Shown: positions 1 through 7,888, counted from the stretch's first letter. The stretch: 64,000 nucleotides of DNA from Rebecca billardiae RCC1528 (GCA_965240325.2 OZ251230.1:1302001-1366000); one strand, 5' to 3'. A program made the numbers and translations. The notes: generated by a model from the letters alone, not told the origin.

Positions 1-1227
1 GTCTCGCGCGCAGGCGCGTCGCGCAGCGCGCGCGCCGGCGCCGGCGCCGGCGCCGATGCCGATGCCGCCCAGAGCACGGGCAGAGCCGGGAGCCGCCGCG
101 CCGACGGTGGCGCGCGCGCCGAGCCGCAGCGGGCGCAGCGGCGAGACGAGCGCCCCGCGGCGTCCGCTGCCGCGGCTACTGCGGAGGCCCCTCTCCGCGC
201 GGTGGCGGCCCCGGGCGCCGACGCTGTCGCGCCGTGGGGGCGCTCAGACGGCGTCACGTCCGCGTCTGACGACGGGGCCGAGGAGGTCCGCCGCGCGGCG
301 GCTGGCGTTCGGCGGGCTGGCGCGGCGCGCAGAGCGGGCGAGGCGCGGCGCGGCGCTGACGACCCAACCACGGCCGCTGCGGACGCGGACGCGTCGGACG
401 AGGACGGCGGCGGGCGGCTGCGACGTGCGGCGGGCGGCGGGCGGCACGCGGGCGGAGCGCGCAGGGCTGACGTGTCACGGCGCGGGGATCTGTCCCCGGC
501 GGCCGCCGATGCTGCGGTGACCTCCCCAGGCACCGAGAGCGGCGAGGGCGACTGGCCAAGCCCGGTCCATCCCACGCGTGGGGCGCGCACGCGCGGCGCA
601 CCGGCGGCGGGTGCATCAACTCGCGCATCGCCACCAGGCTCAACGCCACGCAGCGCTCGCCACCGCGGGCTGGAGCCCTCCTCCGCTTCGCGGCAGGTGG
701 CGCGCGGGCTGGGTACACCTGGCTCCGTGCCGCGGCGGGCTGTTGGTGCAGGACGCCTCGAGTCGTGGCGCACGCCCACGCACTCGAGCGTGCGCCGGGC
801 GCGGCTGCGCGAGCAGACGCCAGGCAGCCCGACGAGTGCGCGCACCATCCGCTCGCCGTGCAACACGTGCACCCCAGCCTCCCACCGAAAGCCGTGGAGG
901 ATCTGATGATTGCTAGCAGCATGGGTGCCCTCCGGAGCTCAAAGGAAACGCCTGAGAGCAGTGGCCGGGCGCCTCCCAGCTCCCGGGTTGTGATCATGCA
1001 TGCTGGCGTGCGGCGGATGGCCGCCTCGAGCTCCCGCATGTCGTCAAACGGCCACGGGAGTATCGCGCGTCAATTCGTCCGGAGCAAAACTGCGCACTGC
1101 ATCAAGCCGATCCGGGCGGGGGCGGCGGGCGCGGAGGACATGTCTAGAACGAATCCTGAGCACTGATGATGAGATTCGGCAGGGAAACACGCGGTCTTAA
1201 GGGCGCCTCTCCGTCTCGGCCGCGTGC

Positions 1228-3120
1228 ATGGCAGCCCGCGGCACCTCGATCGTCATCGGCTCGGCGGCGGTGGCGCAGCGGCTCGGACTCGGTTCGATAA
1301 TCGCGTCGGCTTCCTCCGCCTCGCGCGTCGTCGGCGTCTTCACCAACGATGTGCGCGAGCGCGCGCAGCCGAGCGCTGCAGGCCGAACGTCCGTGCATGA
1401 GCTGAGCGAGATGGCGCGGGTGGTGCAGGCGTTCAACGTTCGTACAGCTCTCCTGACCGACGCGACCGACGCGCAGGCCCACGCGCAGCTCGCCATCGAC
1501 GCCGGGTGCACGCGCATCGTCAACCTCACGAGCGCGCCGCTGATCGACCTGCCGCACGGCGTCGAGCACGAGACGCCGCTCGTGGCGCGGCTGATGGAGC
1601 ACGCGCAGCCGGCGCAGCCGATCCTGCCCAACGCCGTCAGCCTGAGCGCCGGGCGCCTCGAGCGCGAGTACGAGCTCGTCGGGCCGCCCATCGGCCGCGG
1701 CGGCTTTGGCGTCGTGCTCCGCGCGCGCAACCGGCTCGACGGCTGCGAGTACGCCGTCAAGCGCGTCGAGTTCCACTCGCGGCGGGACGGCGAGGGCGCG
1801 CTGCGCGAGGCGCAGGCGATGGCGAAGATCGCGCGCGCGTGCCCGCAGCACATCGTCCAGTACTACTGCAGCTGGGTCGAGGCGGCCGACGAGCACGGCG
1901 CGCGCGCGCTCAGCGAGTGGTCTTCCTCGGTCGGCAGCTCGCCCGCGTCCTCGCGCGCGCCGGCGAGCGCGTCGGGCTGCGGCTCGTCGTCGTCGTGCGC
2001 GGGCTCGGACGCCGCGGGTGAGCACGTCGTGCTGCACCTCGTGATGGAGCTGATGCAGTGCAACACGCTGCGCGCCGAGCTCCTCGGCGCGCGCCGCGCG
2101 TGGACAGACGAGGAGGTGTGCTCGATCATCGAGCAGCTCGCGCTCGCGCTCGCGCACGTGCACGCGGCCGGGTACGTGCACCGCGACGTGGCGCCGGCGA
2201 ACGTGTTCCTCGAGCGGCCCACGCGCGACGCGCAGGTCGCGGGCCTCCCCGCCGGCGGGGCGGCGGGCGGCGCGCTCCCACGCGTCAAGCTTGGCGACTT
2301 TGGGCTGGCGCAGCGGCGCGCCGTCGCCGCGCCCGCGAGCGAGGGTGCACCGCCCGCGGGCGTGGGCGTGCTGGCGGCGGCGGCGAGCGCGGCCCCGGCA
2401 AGTGCCGCGGCGGCGGCCGCCGCGGCCATCCCGCCGCTGGCCATGGCGCTGGGCACGTACCTCTACGCCGCGCCCGAGCAGTACGCACCGGCGAGCGTCG
2501 CGACGAGCGGCGCGCGCGGCAGCGTCGGCTGCGCGGCCGAGCCGCAGGCTGAGCCGAGTGCCGACGTCTTCTCTCTGGGGGTCCTCTGCGCCGAGCTGCT
2601 GCACGGGCCGTTCAGCACGCTGCACGAGCGCGCGCACGTGCTCGGCGCGTTCCGCACGGCCGGCCAGCTCCCGCGCGCCGTGCTCGTGCAGCGCCCCACG
2701 CTCGCTGCCGTCGCGCTGCGCATGACCGCGCCGGTGCCCAGCGAGCGGCCGACGGCCGCAGAGGTAGCCGACACGATGCGAGCGATCGCCGCCGGGCTGG
2801 GCGGCGCGCGGTCGAGCCACACGCAGGCGGCGGGCGCGCCGCAGCCCTTCTCGCCTTCGCCGTGCTCGACGGCCGATGCGCCGCCACCCCCGCTGCCCGT
2901 CACGGGCGCGCTCACGGAGCCCGACTCGTCCGCGGCCGACAGCGCTGGCGGGGCGCCACACCCGGACACCCTGCGAGCGGCAGCGCTCGAGGCTGAGCTC
3001 GCGGCCGCCAAGGCGCGGGTGGCTGAGCTCGAGCACGCTGTGCGCGATCTCGCGCGCACCGTCGATGCGGCGTTGGGTGTCACGGCCACCGCCATGCCCG
3101 AAGCCGAGCTCCGCATGTGA
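1228..3120 (+). CDS. eIF2-alpha kinase-like (PEK family) Ser/Thr kinase with N-terminal Rex-like Rossmann domain and C-terminal coiled coil
   Basis: IGRGGFGVV, RNRLDGCEYAVKRV, HIVQYYCSWVE followed by a Ser-rich insert, LHLVMEL, HRDVAPAN, VKLGDFGLA, GTYLYAAPEQ, DVFSLGV; this layout is typical of eIF2alpha kinases. Confidence 0.88.
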   Translation: MAARGTSIVIGSAAVAQRLGLGSIIASASSASRVVGVFTNDVRERAQPSAAGRTSVHELSEMARVVQAFNVRTALLTDATDAQAHAQLAIDAGCTRIVNLTSAPLIDLPHGVEHETPLVARLMEHAQPAQPILPNAVSLSAGRLEREYELVGPPIGRGGFGVVLRARNRLDGCEYAVKRVEFHSRRDGEGALREAQAMAKIARACPQHIVQYYCSWVEAADEHGARALSEWSSSVGSSPASSRAPASASGCGSSSSCAGSDAAGEHVVLHLVMELMQCNTLRAELLGARRAWTDEEVCSIIEQLALALAHVHAAGYVHRDVAPANVFLERPTRDAQVAGLPAGGAAGGALPRVKLGDFGLAQRRAVAAPASEGAPPAGVGVLAAAASAAPASAAAAAAAAIPPLAMALGTYLYAAPEQYAPASVATSGARGSVGCAAEPQAEPSADVFSLGVLCAELLHGPFSTLHERAHVLGAFRTAGQLPRAVLVQRPTLAAVALRMTAPVPSERPTAAEVADTMRAIAAGLGGARSSHTQAAGAPQPFSPSPCSTADAPPPPLPVTGALTEPDSSAADSAGGAPHPDTLRAAALEAELAAAKARVAELEHAVRDLARTVDAALGVTATAMPEAELRM

Positions 3121-3627
3121 TCTATCTTGCCGCGCGTGCCGTCAGGCCGCGGGCGCTGGCACCGCGCCAGCGCGAGTGCCGAGTACTCAGCGTTGCCGCC
3201 GCTGCGCCGTGGTCATCCGAAGGGGCTCTCTGACGTCGGCGAGTTTGACTGACAGTGGCATCGCTCGATGGTGTACCTGTACGACCTTTCGTGGGCAGGA
3301 CGCTGTTGGCTGTGCGCGGGCGCTGAGCCGAACAGCTTGGCCATGCGAGGCTGATGAACGACTGCGACGGGGGTCATCGAACGGCGGCAGACGCAACAAA
3401 AACAAATGACATATTATGGGGGTAACGCCGCAGCCGATATCTTTTTTTCTGCAGCCGAGTGCAGAAGCGATTTTCCCGGCTTGTCCGGACACAAACCCGC
3501 CGGACCGGCCCGTAGCGGCCGCCCGAATGGGCGACAGTTCGGAAGTGTCCCGCTCACCGCTTTCGCGCGCGCCGGCATTTGTAAACCGTCAACACCGACC
3601 GAGACGCGACCGTCCACGCCCGACTCC

Positions 3628-5061
3628 ATGGCGAGCGACGAGCACAATGCGACGCTCAGCGAGATGCGCTCGTTGCGAACCGACCTGCAGGGCATCCTTG
3701 CAAACTTGCGTCGCTTCTCGCGCGCAACGCACGCGGCGGGCTCCGCCTGCCGCCCGGCGCACCAGGCGCTCGAGATGCATTGGGATCCGCACCCGCAGCG
3801 GGTCTTCCGCTACGGGCGCACGCCCATCCCCGACTTTGGCGTGCGCATCGAAGGCAGCCCCAACTCACAGCCGATCCTCCTCGAGATAGGCATCGCCGAG
3901 GCTCGCTCGGGACAGCGGCTTACCGGCATCCTCAAGGGAGAGACCACCGTGCAGCTGCGCGACGGCGTCGCCACGTTTGACAAGGTCGTGCTGCAGCTGG
4001 CCGCACGCGCCTCGCTCAAGCGCACGCTCACGCTGCAGTTCGTGGTGACGCAGGTGGATCACTCGGCGCATGGCCCACGCGTGCGCGAGCTCCGCTCGAA
4101 GACCGTCATCGTGCGCAACTCGCGCGCTGCCGACGCGACCAAGCGTGCCTCTGACCCCACCCGGGGCAGCAAGCGCGCGCTCGAGGAGATCGGCATGGTG
4201 ATCTCCTCGAGCAATCAGCCCGCAGTGGCCGAGGCCCCTCGCTCGCCCGCCTTGCGCCCGACGCATCCACCTGACGGACCAGACCTCCTCGATGTCGCCT
4301 TCCCCGTCGACGAGCACGCCTCTGTGCCGCACAGCTTCTCGGACGCTGTCCTGGCGTCGGACGAGCCCACCGCCGAGGAGCTGCAGCTGCTGCTCGACAA
4401 CGACCCGCTGCTCGCGAGCGTGTACTCGAGCGGGGCGCCGACGCCGCCCGAGTACGAGGATGCACACGTGACGCAGTCGATGCCGTTCGCGGCCAAGCGG
4501 CCGCGCACCGGCCTCAGCGACGTGCTCGAGCTCGAGCCCGAGCCAGACACCGACGCCGATGGCTCGCTGGCTGACTTTGTGGGCACGAATCCGCACCCGC
4601 CCTCGCCGGTTGAGCAGGTGTACCGCGGCAACAGCTCCCGTCGCCCGCCGAGCGACGAGAGCACAGACCGCTCCTGGAGTGGCGACGTCGACGCCGATGC
4701 GGAGGATGGCGAACCTGTGTGGTTTGACGCGGTCTCGGGCGCGGACGGCGATGATGGCACAGCGCTCCAAGCGGCGACTCCAACGTTCAAGGCAGTCGCG
4801 CGCGTTGACGCTGGCAAAGATGGCGTGGCGCCATCGCCTGTGTGGCCACCGGACTCGTGGGCGCGCATCGCGATGCTGGCTGGGTTTGCATACGCGCTTG
4901 CGCTCTCCGCCGTGCAGGCTGTTGCGCTTGCGCAGGTGTTCGTACCGAGCCCTAGCTGTCGCTCGCGGCGGCAGCACACCGCGTTGCATCACGTCCAGCA
5001 GGCACCCAGGGTCAAAGCACCTTCGGCGGCGCTGCGCCTCGCGGGCACGGTTTCGAGCTAG
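3628..5061 (+). CDS. Hypothetical protein: possible Ig-fold DNA-binding domain, acidic/Pro-rich middle, C-terminal TM helix
   Basis: Long ORF (3406..5061; ATG 3628 preferred) with coding-like sequence; beta-rich LKGETTVQLRDGVATFDKV...LTLQFVV...RSKTVIVRNSR; hydrophobic WARIAMLAGFAYALALSAVQAVALAQVFV. Confidence 0.7.
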   Translation: MASDEHNATLSEMRSLRTDLQGILANLRRFSRATHAAGSACRPAHQALEMHWDPHPQRVFRYGRTPIPDFGVRIEGSPNSQPILLEIGIAEARSGQRLTGILKGETTVQLRDGVATFDKVVLQLAARASLKRTLTLQFVVTQVDHSAHGPRVRELRSKTVIVRNSRAADATKRASDPTRGSKRALEEIGMVISSSNQPAVAEAPRSPALRPTHPPDGPDLLDVAFPVDEHASVPHSFSDAVLASDEPTAEELQLLLDNDPLLASVYSSGAPTPPEYEDAHVTQSMPFAAKRPRTGLSDVLELEPEPDTDADGSLADFVGTNPHPPSPVEQVYRGNSSRRPPSDESTDRSWSGDVDADAEDGEPVWFDAVSGADGDDGTALQAATPTFKAVARVDAGKDGVAPSPVWPPDSWARIAMLAGFAYALALSAVQAVALAQVFVPSPSCRSRRQHTALHHVQQAPRVKAPSAALRLAGTVSS

Positions 5062-5478: not shown

Positions 5479-6539
5479 CTAATTCACGGGAAGGCTGAAC
5501 ACCCTCACCATCCCGAGGTCGCGCTCCTTGTCGTCGCCCGCGTACGCGAGGAGATGCTGCGTCGGGTGCCACGCGATCGAGTTCATCGCGACGCTCGAGC
5601 TGATGGCGTGCACCTGCTCGCCCGTGTCCACGTCGGCGATGTCGATGAAGGCGTCCTCCGAGGCGGACGCGAGCAGCTTCCCGTCGTGCGAGAAGGACAG
5701 CGTGCGCACCGGCCACTCGAGCCGCGTGAGCGTGCGCGTGCACACCAGCTCGGGCAGGCTCCACACGCTCACGAGCGCGTCCGCGCCGCCGACCGCAATG
5801 TGTCTCCCGGTCGGGTCGAACTGGACGCAGTAGCAGTTGGCCGTGTGGCCCTGCACACGGCGCGGGGGGCGGGCGCGGCTCGGCGGTGAGCGGCGCGGCG
5901 CGGCGCGAGGCACGAGGGGCGCCGCCGCCGCAGCCAGCCGTGGCGCACCTGCAGCGAGCGGAAGCTCTCGACTTTGCTCCCGCCCTTGAGGAAGTTGGCG
6001 TAGCGCAGCACCTCCACGGTGCCCTGCCCGGTGGTGAGGAACAGGAGCGAGCCGTCCCTGTTCCACGACATCTCGTTCACCTCGTACGGGAACTTGGTCG
6101 TCTTGAGCATCTTGCCTTTCCGCGTGTCGATGATCGAGATGTCGTCGTCCTTGTTGCCGACGGCGATGTGGTGGTCGCCGTCGGGCGACCACGCAATGTT
6201 GATGTTCTCTCCGCGCGTCTCGATCACGTTGGTGCAGCGGCCGGTGCGCGCGTCCCAGAGGCGGACGGTCTTGTCACCCGAGGCGGTGGCGAGGCGGTCA
6301 GGGTGCTGCGGATCCCAGCACAGCTGATCGACCGCCTCCTGGTGCCCGCGCAGCTCGATGTGTGACTCCTTGCCGCCGGCGCCGTCCGCGATGCCCGACC
6401 ACACGATGGCTGTCGTGTCGACCGAGCCCGACGCAAGCTTCGAGCCCGTCGAGTTCCACGCGACGGCATGCACCACCTTCTTGTGCTTCTGAAACTCGCG
6501 CGTCACGCCGCGCCCCTTCATCGTCGCACCGCTGCTCAT
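5479..6539 (-). CDS. THOC3: THO complex subunit 3 (TEX1) WD40 protein; exons 6539-5949 and 5850-5479
   Basis: VHAVAWNSTGSKLASGSVD, VDQLCWDP, GENINIAWSPDG, GHTANCYCVQFDPTG, LEWPVRTLSFSHDG; a 98-bp GT-AG intron (5948-5851) joins the two ORFs in frame. Confidence 0.92.
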
Positions 6540-6625
6540 GGCCGCGATCGCGAGCGTCGCCGTCGGCGCGACGACGGCACCAACAGCACCACGCAGCACT
6601 GACCTGCCAGGCCGGTCGCGTCAGC

Positions 6626-7888
6626 ATGGCGGCAGAGGAGGAGTTCGTCGACTGGTACGCCTTCGTTGGCGTCGAGCGCGACGCGCCGGCGCGCGAGATC
6701 TCGCGCGCGTACCGCAAACGGGCGCTCTCGTGCCACCCCGACAAGCGACCAGGCGATGCCGCCGCCGCGAAGGAGTTTGCCACCCTCCAGCGCGCGTACG
6801 ACGTGCTCTCGGACGAGGCCGCGCGAAAGGCGTTCGACGGCGTGCTCGAAGCCCGCGAGCTGCGCGAGCGGCGGCGCGATGCGGAGGACGGGAGGCGGCG
6901 GAAGCAGCGCGAGGATCTGGAGGCTCGCGAGGCTGCCGCCCGCGCTGCGCAGCGCGCCGCGTACGGCGGCGGCGCGGCGCCCGCACCCAAGCGCGCGCGA
7001 GCCGCGGAGGCCGACGAGGACGGCCCCGAAGATGCGCGTGCCAGCCTCGCAGCGGAGACGGCGGCACGCAAGCAGCTCGAGGCGGAGCTGCAGCGTATTC
7101 GCGATCGCAACGCCGCAGCCGCCGCAGCGCGCGCGCGTGCCAGCGCGAGCGCCGCACGCGCCGGCGCAAGCGGCGGGAGCTCAGACGACGGTGCTGCCCT
7201 CACGTTGCGCTGGGCAGCCGGCACGGCCTACTCGGCCGAGCTGCTGCAGGCGCTGGTGCGCTCGGTGTGCCCGCCGCGTGGGCCAAGTGCGCCACCGCTG
7301 AGTGGGCCGCGGTTCACCGTGGTGCCCTCGCCTTCGGGTCGTCCACAGGTGCGCTGCGTGCGCCGCGCTCGGCCCCCCCCCCTTGTGTGCCCAGCACCTC
7401 TGCCGAGCCCCTTCCTCTGCCGCTCCTCCTTGGCTCTGGCTGATTGCCCCCCGCGCCCGCGACGCCCACGCACATCTGGGCAGGCCCTCGTGCACTTCGC
7501 CGTGCGCGCCGACGCGAGCGCCGTCGCCGCGCTCTGGCGGGGCGGCGGCGGTCTGGACGAGGACCTGGAGGCGAGCACAGGCATCCGCGCAGAGCTGAGC
7601 GGTGCGGACGGCGGCGGCACGGGCCGCAGGCCAGACGGCGGCGCGACCGGGGCGAGCGCGAGCGCTGCAGGGGCAGACGGCGGCGCGGCTCCCGGAGACG
7701 GGAGCGTGGGCGCTAGCGCGCGCGGCACGGCTGCGCCTGAGCTGTGGACGGCAGGCGGCTCAGAGCTTGGGCTGGACGAGCTGGTGCACTGCACGGAGTA
7801 CGAGCGTGTGACACTGCTGCGGCTGCGGCGCGCGGCGGAGCGCCAGCAGCAGGAGCGACGGGCGGCTGCGATGCCAGCCGCGCCGTGA
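6626..7888 (+). CDS. DNAJC17: J-domain protein, DNAJC17/Cwc23-like; probable in-frame intron 7349-7483
   Basis: J domain with HPD (AYRKRALSCHPDK), following charged helix RRKQREDLEARE, C-terminal EYERVTLLRLRRAAERQ typical of DNAJC17. Confidence 0.82.
   Translation: MAAEEEFVDWYAFVGVERDAPAREISRAYRKRALSCHPDKRPGDAAAAKEFATLQRAYDVLSDEAARKAFDGVLEARELRERRRDAEDGRRRKQREDLEAREAAARAAQRAAYGGGAAPAPKRARAAEADEDGPEDARASLAAETAARKQLEAELQRIRDRNAAAAAARARASASAARAGASGGSSDDGAALTLRWAAGTAYSAELLQALVRSVCPPRGPSAPPLSGPRFTVVPSPSGRPQVRCVRRARPPPLVCPAPLPSPFLCRSSLALADCPPRPRRPRTSGQALVHFAVRADASAVAALWRGGGGLDEDLEASTGIRAELSGADGGGTGRRPDGGATGASASAAGADGGAAPGDGSVGASARGTAAPELWTAGGSELGLDELVHCTEYERVTLLRLRRAAERQQQERRAAAMPAAP

Follow-up and report, generated by a model that had tools for sequence, protein, structure and literature searches.

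A Rex-like Rossmann domain fused to an eIF2alpha-family kinase in Rebecca billardiae, and its relatives in Pavlovales-type algae and Picozoa

The stretch of DNA considered here is a window of 64,000 nucleotides from Rebecca billardiae RCC1528 (GCA_965240325.2 OZ251230.1:1302001-1366000), with a G+C content of about 70%. Near its start it carries a complete intron-less gene (1228..3120; 630 codons plus stop, from the list of open reading frames [ORFs]), located on the plus strand together with all the features of this gene described below. The product joins a Rex-type Rossmann domain, a linker, an eIF2alpha-family protein kinase, and a probable C-terminal coiled coil, and the domain of about 125 residues with which this 630-residue protein directly opens is a homologue of the Rossmann portion of Rex, the NADH sensor of bacteria. 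In the translation, an in-frame TAA (1198..1200) stands nine codons 5' of the ATG, and the reading frame upstream of the gene encodes no Rex winged-helix domain. The closest homologues of the product come from Pavlovales. In particular, it is collinear over residues 1 to 622, with 63% identity, with the 630-amino-acid transcript product P0003 of sample MMETSP1335, which is labeled Chrysoculter rhomboideus RCC1486 and is entered in EukProt as Rebecca sp. RCC1486, a pavlovophyte. The protein of this relative has the same start codon and the same M-A-A-R N terminus, and its transcript contains an in-frame stop four codons 5' of the ATG; thus, the gene has no intron, and no exon lies upstream from which a DNA-binding domain could be gained.

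The initial annotation, made from the sequence alone, had placed a Rex-like Rossmann domain at 1240-1605, quoting four peptides, all of which (4/4) are found in the translation of ORF 1228-3120, inside these nucleotides, at residues 7 to 16, 33 to 41, 56 to 77, and 82 to 112. The domain was confirmed by the NCBIfam Rex models, by family profiles run against the PDB, and by fold searches. Residues 1 to 151 matched eight NCBIfam Rex models (best E value, 6.3e-7) and nothing else at an E value of ≤1, and a scan with the whole protein added a ninth. The matches lie in a single register and cover profile positions ~80 to 190 of ~210, that is, the Rossmann half only. The winged-helix DNA-binding domain of Rex (Pfam PF06971) is absent from the window protein: the ORF starts at strand beta-1, in-frame stops lie upstream, and the profiles match from position ~80. 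Furthermore, a profile built from six N-terminal domains of the fused family retrieved Rex 5zz5 from the PDB at an E value of 6.7e-6, and one built from ten such domains retrieved it at 6.2e-9, with all five matches at an E value of ≤0.01 being Rex. The Rossmann core, which these searches, the structural models, and the selection analysis described below define as residues 5 to 115 (1240..1572), has predicted strands at residues 6 to 10, 33 to 39, 56 to 58, 73 to 76, 96 to 99, and 113 to 115.

Some searches of the same region gave little or nothing, and they would suit the explanation that the Rex likeness is a chance or generic Rossmann similarity, or that the N-terminal stretch lies outside the real protein owing to a wrong gene model. 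Pfam did not recognize residues 1 to 151 of the window protein, where CoA_binding (PF02629; threshold, 22.3 bits) had no match at an E value of ≤1. The single-sequence search of the PDB was marginal, with Rex at an E value of 0.07 and significance reached only with the family profiles, and an ESM Atlas feature search returned no usable match. A sub-threshold Pfam match to the SecA P-loop (E value, 0.056) in the N-terminal domain was treated as noise. Against this explanation stand the Rex-specific matches of the sequence profiles, the same N terminus that follows an in-frame stop in the relative's transcript, a ratio of nonsynonymous to synonymous substitution rates (dN/dS) of about 0.06 across the domain (the roughness of which is taken up below), the results of the fold comparisons, and the existence of a less diverged orthologue. 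We consider it most improbable and already largely refuted.

As for the predicted structure, a first AlphaFold model was obtained from an alignment of six sequences, all of the fused family (predicted local distance difference test [pLDDT], 63), and a second one from an alignment of 14 sequences that included three bacterial Rex proteins (pLDDT, 70). Both present the same beta-alpha-beta order and a final helix at residues 118 to 125. The fold check that had been proposed for the N-terminal residues came out as anticipated, since the top 39 PDB matches of the first model in Foldseek were all Rex (E values, 1.8e-6 to 7.6e-4). With the same model, VIA-align gave 18 Rex entries with Z scores of 12.3 to 13.6 over 120 to 125 residues, at 2.4 to 3.6 Å, followed by succinyl-CoA synthetase alpha (Z score, 10.8). 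In an exhaustive comparison of the second model with 48,161 representative chains, the two Rex representatives ranked first and second (Z scores, 15.2 and 14.1), and the next fold, the CoA-binding domain of ATP-citrate lyase (Z score, 10.6), followed at a distance of 3.5 Z units. The structural alignments span Rex residues ~79 to 212, which make up its entire C-terminal domain, helix alpha-9 included. In the window protein, the predicted equivalent of this domain-swapped C-terminal helix (residues 117 to 125; 1576..1602) leads into the kinase linker; it appears in both models, both of them monomers, and aligns with the end of the Rex chains (residues 198 to 212).

The fusion of a Rex-like domain with a kinase was found in two groups, the Pavlovales-type algae, which are haptophytes, and Picozoa, and in both the architecture is conserved. 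A phmmer search of residues 1 to 150 against 1.84 billion representatives yielded eight proteins, seven of which were the query itself or shared its fused design, and no bacterial Rex was among the matches, a result that would suit a single family and one origin for the module. The remaining protein, P0008 (1,656 amino acids, highly repetitive; E value, 1.7e-5), was judged to be a spurious match to a repetitive sequence and left aside. One of the proteins retrieved, P0009, of which P0011 is the full length, contains the canonical loop G-A-G-T-L-G, and a word search from P0011 led to P0012 to P0017, a set of marine metagenome clusters in which EukProt labels name Picomonas judraskeda and Picozoa sp. 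COSAG02; the assignment to Picozoa rests on single-cell assemblies. Kinase identity between the Pavlovales-type and picozoan clades is 31%, a value that is not decisive as to whether they are sisters. The picozoan N-terminal domain taken alone reaches 25.7 bits with Pfam CoA_binding, against the threshold of 22.3 (20.9 bits for the full-length picozoan protein), and matches Rex models at an E value of 1.3e-13. Moreover, it shares 34% identity (E value, 9e-12) with the actinomycete Rex P0039, a protein of 241 amino acids with both Rex Pfam domains and ~70% identity to Streptomyces Rex. The picozoan orthologue, being less diverged, bridges the window domain to Rex. The actinomycete match may reflect the Ala-rich composition shared in the word search; furthermore, the loci related to P0039 (80 returned, 79 from Streptomyces and one from an uncultured actinomycete) are too narrow a set for a phylogeny, and therefore we make no claim on the donor lineage of the module.

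A few gene models of this family deserve a remark. P0002, an MMETSP model of 519 amino acids, has a C-terminal tail that is exactly what frame 3 of the 5' untranslated region of the same transcript encodes (L002 1-102), and because of this match we regard it as a misassembled, wrapped-around version of the 630-amino-acid P0003. P0004 (NCBI KAJ1638443.1, Pavlovales sp. CCMP2436), a "hypothetical protein" of 253 amino acids, matches P0005, a 617-amino-acid product of an MMETSP transcript, over the first ~190 residues of the latter and diverges thereafter; it is the same kinase gene, truncated by the genome annotation. Finally, P0015 (EukProt Picozoa sp. COSAG02, 815 amino acids) contains two insertions, one in the Rossmann domain and one in the kinase, which are absent from its close relatives and look like unspliced introns read through.

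Downstream of the linker, residues 142 to 521 (1651..2790) form the kinase domain (Pfam Pkinase E value, 2.6e-25). The fusion of the two domains in one ORF, already proposed from the sequence, was verified: the best PDB matches in phmmer are PERK (1.3e-23), HRI (1.3e-19), GCN2 (2.2e-16), and PKR (1.5e-12), with Wee1 as the next kinase family (~1e-12), and the relative is transcribed from the same start codon. A Ser/Ala-rich insert between strands beta-4 and beta-5 (residues 223 to 263; 1894..2016; dN/dS, 0.33), a hallmark of eIF2alpha kinases, aligns with the insert of PERK 3qd2, and in the HMMER alignments to PERK 3qd2 and 4x7h the helix-alphaG region (residues 462 to 482; 2611..2673) falls opposite the F-S-T-Q-M-E-R stretch of PERK. 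It is through this region that eIF2alpha kinases dock their substrate. Toward the C terminus, a heptad-like helix (residues 582 to 612; 2971..3063; dN/dS, 0.24), probably a coiled coil, was read directly from the sequence and aligns with P0003; a similar Leu/Glu/Ala-rich C-terminal helix, judged by eye, occurs in the other family members.

According to the motif table, the catalytic loop (2179..2202) reads H-R-D-V-A-P-A-N and departs from the canonical HRDLKPxN, with Ala321 in place of the usual Lys of HRDxKxxN. This Lys has been lost in all five Pavlovales-type members, where the loop is HRDV[A/S][P/A]AN, and is kept in the seven picozoan-type members (7/7). A pseudokinase or scaffold has to be considered, in which the sensor pocket and the catalytic loop would both have decayed and the protein would act by binding eIF2alpha or another partner instead of phosphorylating it, and the coincidence of the Lys loss with the loss of the NAD signature described below would suit such a protein. 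Nevertheless, none of the remaining catalytic residues has been lost (GRGGFG, the Lys of beta-3 in YAVK, the Glu of alphaC, the Asp of HRD, Asn325, DFG, and APE), and purifying selection acts on the kinase lobes, with a dN/dS of 0.11 to 0.18. Tyrosine kinases likewise do without a Lys at that position of the catalytic loop. A pseudokinase therefore seems to us quite unlikely, and the window kinase is probably active but atypical.

Details of the interaction between Rex and nicotinamide adenine dinucleotide (NAD[H]) are available for the protein of Thermotoga maritima, whose P-loop is the GxGxxG of residues 89 to 94 and in which Asn92, Ile93, Asp115, and Lys120 hydrogen-bond the ADP part of the cofactor (PMC8836258). 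Val153 and Tyr100' lie at the nicotinamide ribose, with stacking on Tyr100', and the NADH-specific contacts are made where alpha-9 begins, by Ile190-Asp191-Ile192; the dimer is formed through the Rossmann domain and the swapped alpha-9, which is tilted by NADH binding (PMC8836258). We mapped these residues by aligning the window protein to 5zz5 with HMMER and to the bacterial Rex P0039 with MAFFT.

Both alignments confirmed that the dinucleotide-binding loop of the window protein (I-V-I-G-S-A-A-V-A; 1249..1275) is degenerate, as had been noticed: the GxGxxG of Rex has become G11-S-A13-A-V-A16, with Ala for the second and third Gly, whereas the picozoan proteins keep it as GAG(T/S)LG. A Gly-to-Ala replacement in the loop of Streptomyces Rex (G102A) is reported to abolish the response to NADH. 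The position of Asn92 is taken by Ala14 (Thr or Ser in the picozoan proteins). At the end of strand beta-2 (V-G-V-F-T-N-D; 1330..1350), the Asp115 that binds the adenine ribose is replaced by Thr39, whereas the picozoan proteins retain its equivalent in a Phe-Asp pair. Lys120 corresponds to Glu44. The stacking Tyr100 corresponds to Gly22, and it is lost in the picozoan proteins as well (Ser, with His adjacent); the same is true of Val153-Pro154, which in the window protein is Thr77-Asp78. The V-E-x-I-D at the start of alpha-9 is present in the picozoan proteins, not in the window protein. The four further Pavlovales-type members show degeneration at the same positions as the window protein.

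The stretch from Thr39 to Arg45, with Thr39 followed by Arg43 and Arg45, could be read as a switch to NADP, but we rejected this reading because the stretch is not conserved among the Pavlovales-type members. More generally, the replacements that follow beta-2 vary among these members, and therefore no alternative nucleotide motif is conserved.

Selection was examined by the Nei-Gojobori method, comparing the window gene with the transcript of the MMETSP1335 relative. The Rex-like domain has the lowest dN/dS in the gene, 0.06, compared to the 0.11 to 0.18 of the kinase lobes reported above and to 0.33 to 0.40 in the inserts and the tail, all of these being rough values because dS is near saturation (~1.6). 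The Rex-like domain is under strong purifying selection and, although degenerate, is clearly functional.

Taken together, the contacts and the constraint bear on what the domain does. The initial annotation had advanced a redox- or dinucleotide-responsive kinase, with the caveat that the domain might only mediate dimerization. For the window gene, the former proposal found no support, given the replacement of the canonical NAD contacts (GxGxxG, Asn92, Asp115, Lys120, Tyr100, and Val153-Pro154), and on account of this replacement we infer that the caveat is the more likely reading. We therefore favor, with a probability of roughly 0.6, the view that the window domain would be a conserved dimerizing or regulatory module, ligand independent or retargeted, without canonical NAD(H) binding.

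A direct redox or dinucleotide sensor, in which the phosphorylation of eIF2alpha would be controlled by a Rex-like domain still able to bind a nucleotide such as NAD(H), NADP(H), or a relative of these, is in our opinion unlikely in the window protein, yet it can draw on several observations: the fold and the alpha-9 helix have been kept, constraint on the protein is strongest in this domain, three of the six positions of the hydrophobic pocket are conservatively maintained (Val88 as Ile10, Val134 as Leu59, and Leu137 as Met62), and the canonical loop and Asp persist in the picozoan orthologues. On the other hand, two of the three loop glycines and the polar and stacking contacts listed above have been replaced, and the replacements after beta-2 differ from one Pavlovales-type member to another. 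Direct control by NAD(H) or redox state is more plausible in Picozoa than in the window gene.

Several points weigh against the dimerizing or regulatory module that we favor. The very strong constraint on the pocket-proximal residues 73 to 102 would also fit a retained ligand pocket, and the saturation of dS limits what the ratios can carry. Without its Lys, the catalytic loop could be that of a pseudokinase. The confidence of the structural models is middling, and the alignment behind the second one contained bacterial Rex. Expression is documented by transcripts of relatives and orthologues, not of R. billardiae RCC1528 itself. Moreover, the Tyr100 and the Val-Pro of Rex are missing from the picozoan copies as well, and therefore a discrimination between NADH and NAD+ is hypothetical even in Picozoa.

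It is possible to hypothesize the following course of events for a dimerizing or regulatory module of this kind. The protein would be a cytosolic eIF2alpha-family kinase with an N-terminal regulatory module descended from the half of Rex that binds NAD(H) and forms dimers, its Rossmann domain; the DNA-binding domain has been lost, and the Rossmann core and the predicted transducer helix alpha-9 have been retained. From alpha-9, a linker of ~20 residues leads to the kinase N-lobe, with the probable coiled coil at the end of the protein, and the Rex module and the coiled coil would together keep two kinase chains paired. The eIF2alpha kinases PKR, PERK, and GCN2 are switched on by the formation of back-to-back dimers of their N-lobes. 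Since alpha-9 is joined to the N-lobe through some 20 residues, the module would be in a good position to dictate how the two kinases of a dimer are arranged. In the ancestral form, which may still exist in Picozoa, the binding of NAD(H) would tilt alpha-9, as in Rex, and thereby determine kinase activity; in the lineage of the window gene, the canonical contacts would then have been lost, leaving a dimerization or regulatory module that is ligand independent or differently liganded.

By both sequence profile and structure, the closest relative of the window domain is Rex (T. maritima 5zz5 and 7wb3, Streptococcus agalactiae 3keo, and the Streptomyces protein), with which it shares the Rossmann fold of the CoA_binding type including the C-terminal helix, the strand order, and motifs resembling A-G-x-x-x-I-[LV]-N and V-P-x-G-V-E. 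Different from Rex, the window protein has no winged-helix domain, has a kinase output instead of DNA binding, belongs to a eukaryotic host, and shows replacements at the equivalents of the GxGxxG loop, Asp115, Tyr100, and Val153-Pro154. Its kinase domain is most similar to those of PERK, HRI, GCN2, and PKR, with which it has in common the beta-4/beta-5 insert, the alphaG-region motif (as aligned with PERK), and the modular logic of a sensor or dimerization domain beside the kinase. The sensor modules known in that family are a luminal domain, a heme-binding N-terminal domain, HisRS-like and RWD domains, and double-stranded RNA-binding domains (PMC3359775). The window protein differs from all four kinases in its Rex-type module, in the Ala at the catalytic-loop Lys, and in the added putative C-terminal coiled coil. 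The picozoan orthologues have the same three-part architecture, and their N-terminal domains, which are 33% identical to that of the window protein, were the only Rex-like proteins that it retrieved from the 1.84 billion representatives; however, they present, unlike the window protein, GAG(T/S)LG, the Phe-Asp at the end of beta-2, the V-E-x-I-D of alpha-9, HRD[I/V/L]KPGN, and DLG in place of DFG.

Full-text literature searches returned no description of a fusion between Rex and an eIF2alpha kinase. The window protein is, as far as its sequence and predicted fold indicate, an eIF2alpha-family kinase with a new and bacterially derived sensor module. The classical four eIF2alpha kinases sense uncharged tRNA, double-stranded RNA, heme or mitochondrial stress, and unfolded protein; none of them is known to read the pyridine-nucleotide redox state directly, and in animals an imbalance of NADH and NAD+ reaches the integrated stress response only indirectly. 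As a tentative proposal, which we hold possible without counting on it, Picozoa and pavlovophytes would share an undescribed class of eIF2alpha kinases with a captured Rex sensor, the picozoan-type form reading the cytosolic NADH/NAD+ ratio directly and translating it into a shutdown of protein synthesis and the window copy being a derived form whose ligand has been rewired or lost. If this were true, the presence in a eukaryotic kinase of the half of a bacterial NADH sensor that does the sensing would represent a new input to translational control, and it would clearly exemplify how the sensor domain of a bacterial one-component system can be reused with a eukaryotic output. The picozoan versions retain the P-loop and the ribose-binding Asp and the pavlovophyte ones have lost both, which makes the two a ready-made comparison for asking whether the module governs the kinase and by what means. 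The Rex module is in use in engineered NADH biosensors, and a natural coupling of Rex to a kinase could interest those who build such tools.

The genes that surround the kinase gene are typically eukaryotic, with an orthologue of THOC3 and a DnaJ protein just downstream. An ORF of 551 amino acids directly follows the kinase gene (3406-5061, plus strand), and its only match is a sub-threshold one to a calmodulin-binding-protein-like N-terminal domain (E value, 5.5e-4; 20.5 versus 25.5 bits). The orthologue of THOC3, the WD40 subunit of the THO complex, occupies 5479-6599 on the minus strand in two ORFs, 5769-6599 and 5479-6192, which match positions 1 to 161 and 165 to 272 of the Pfam THOC3 propeller profile; since these are consecutive parts of the profile, the two ORFs are separated by a single short intron or by a change of frame. 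The DnaJ-domain protein (6362-7888, plus strand; Pfam E value, 2e-19, at ORF residues 97 to 159) probably has its real start at an internal Met just before the J domain. Farther along the window, the segment 52001-54000 has a G+C content of 85%, far above the window average, together with a strong AT skew (-0.29).

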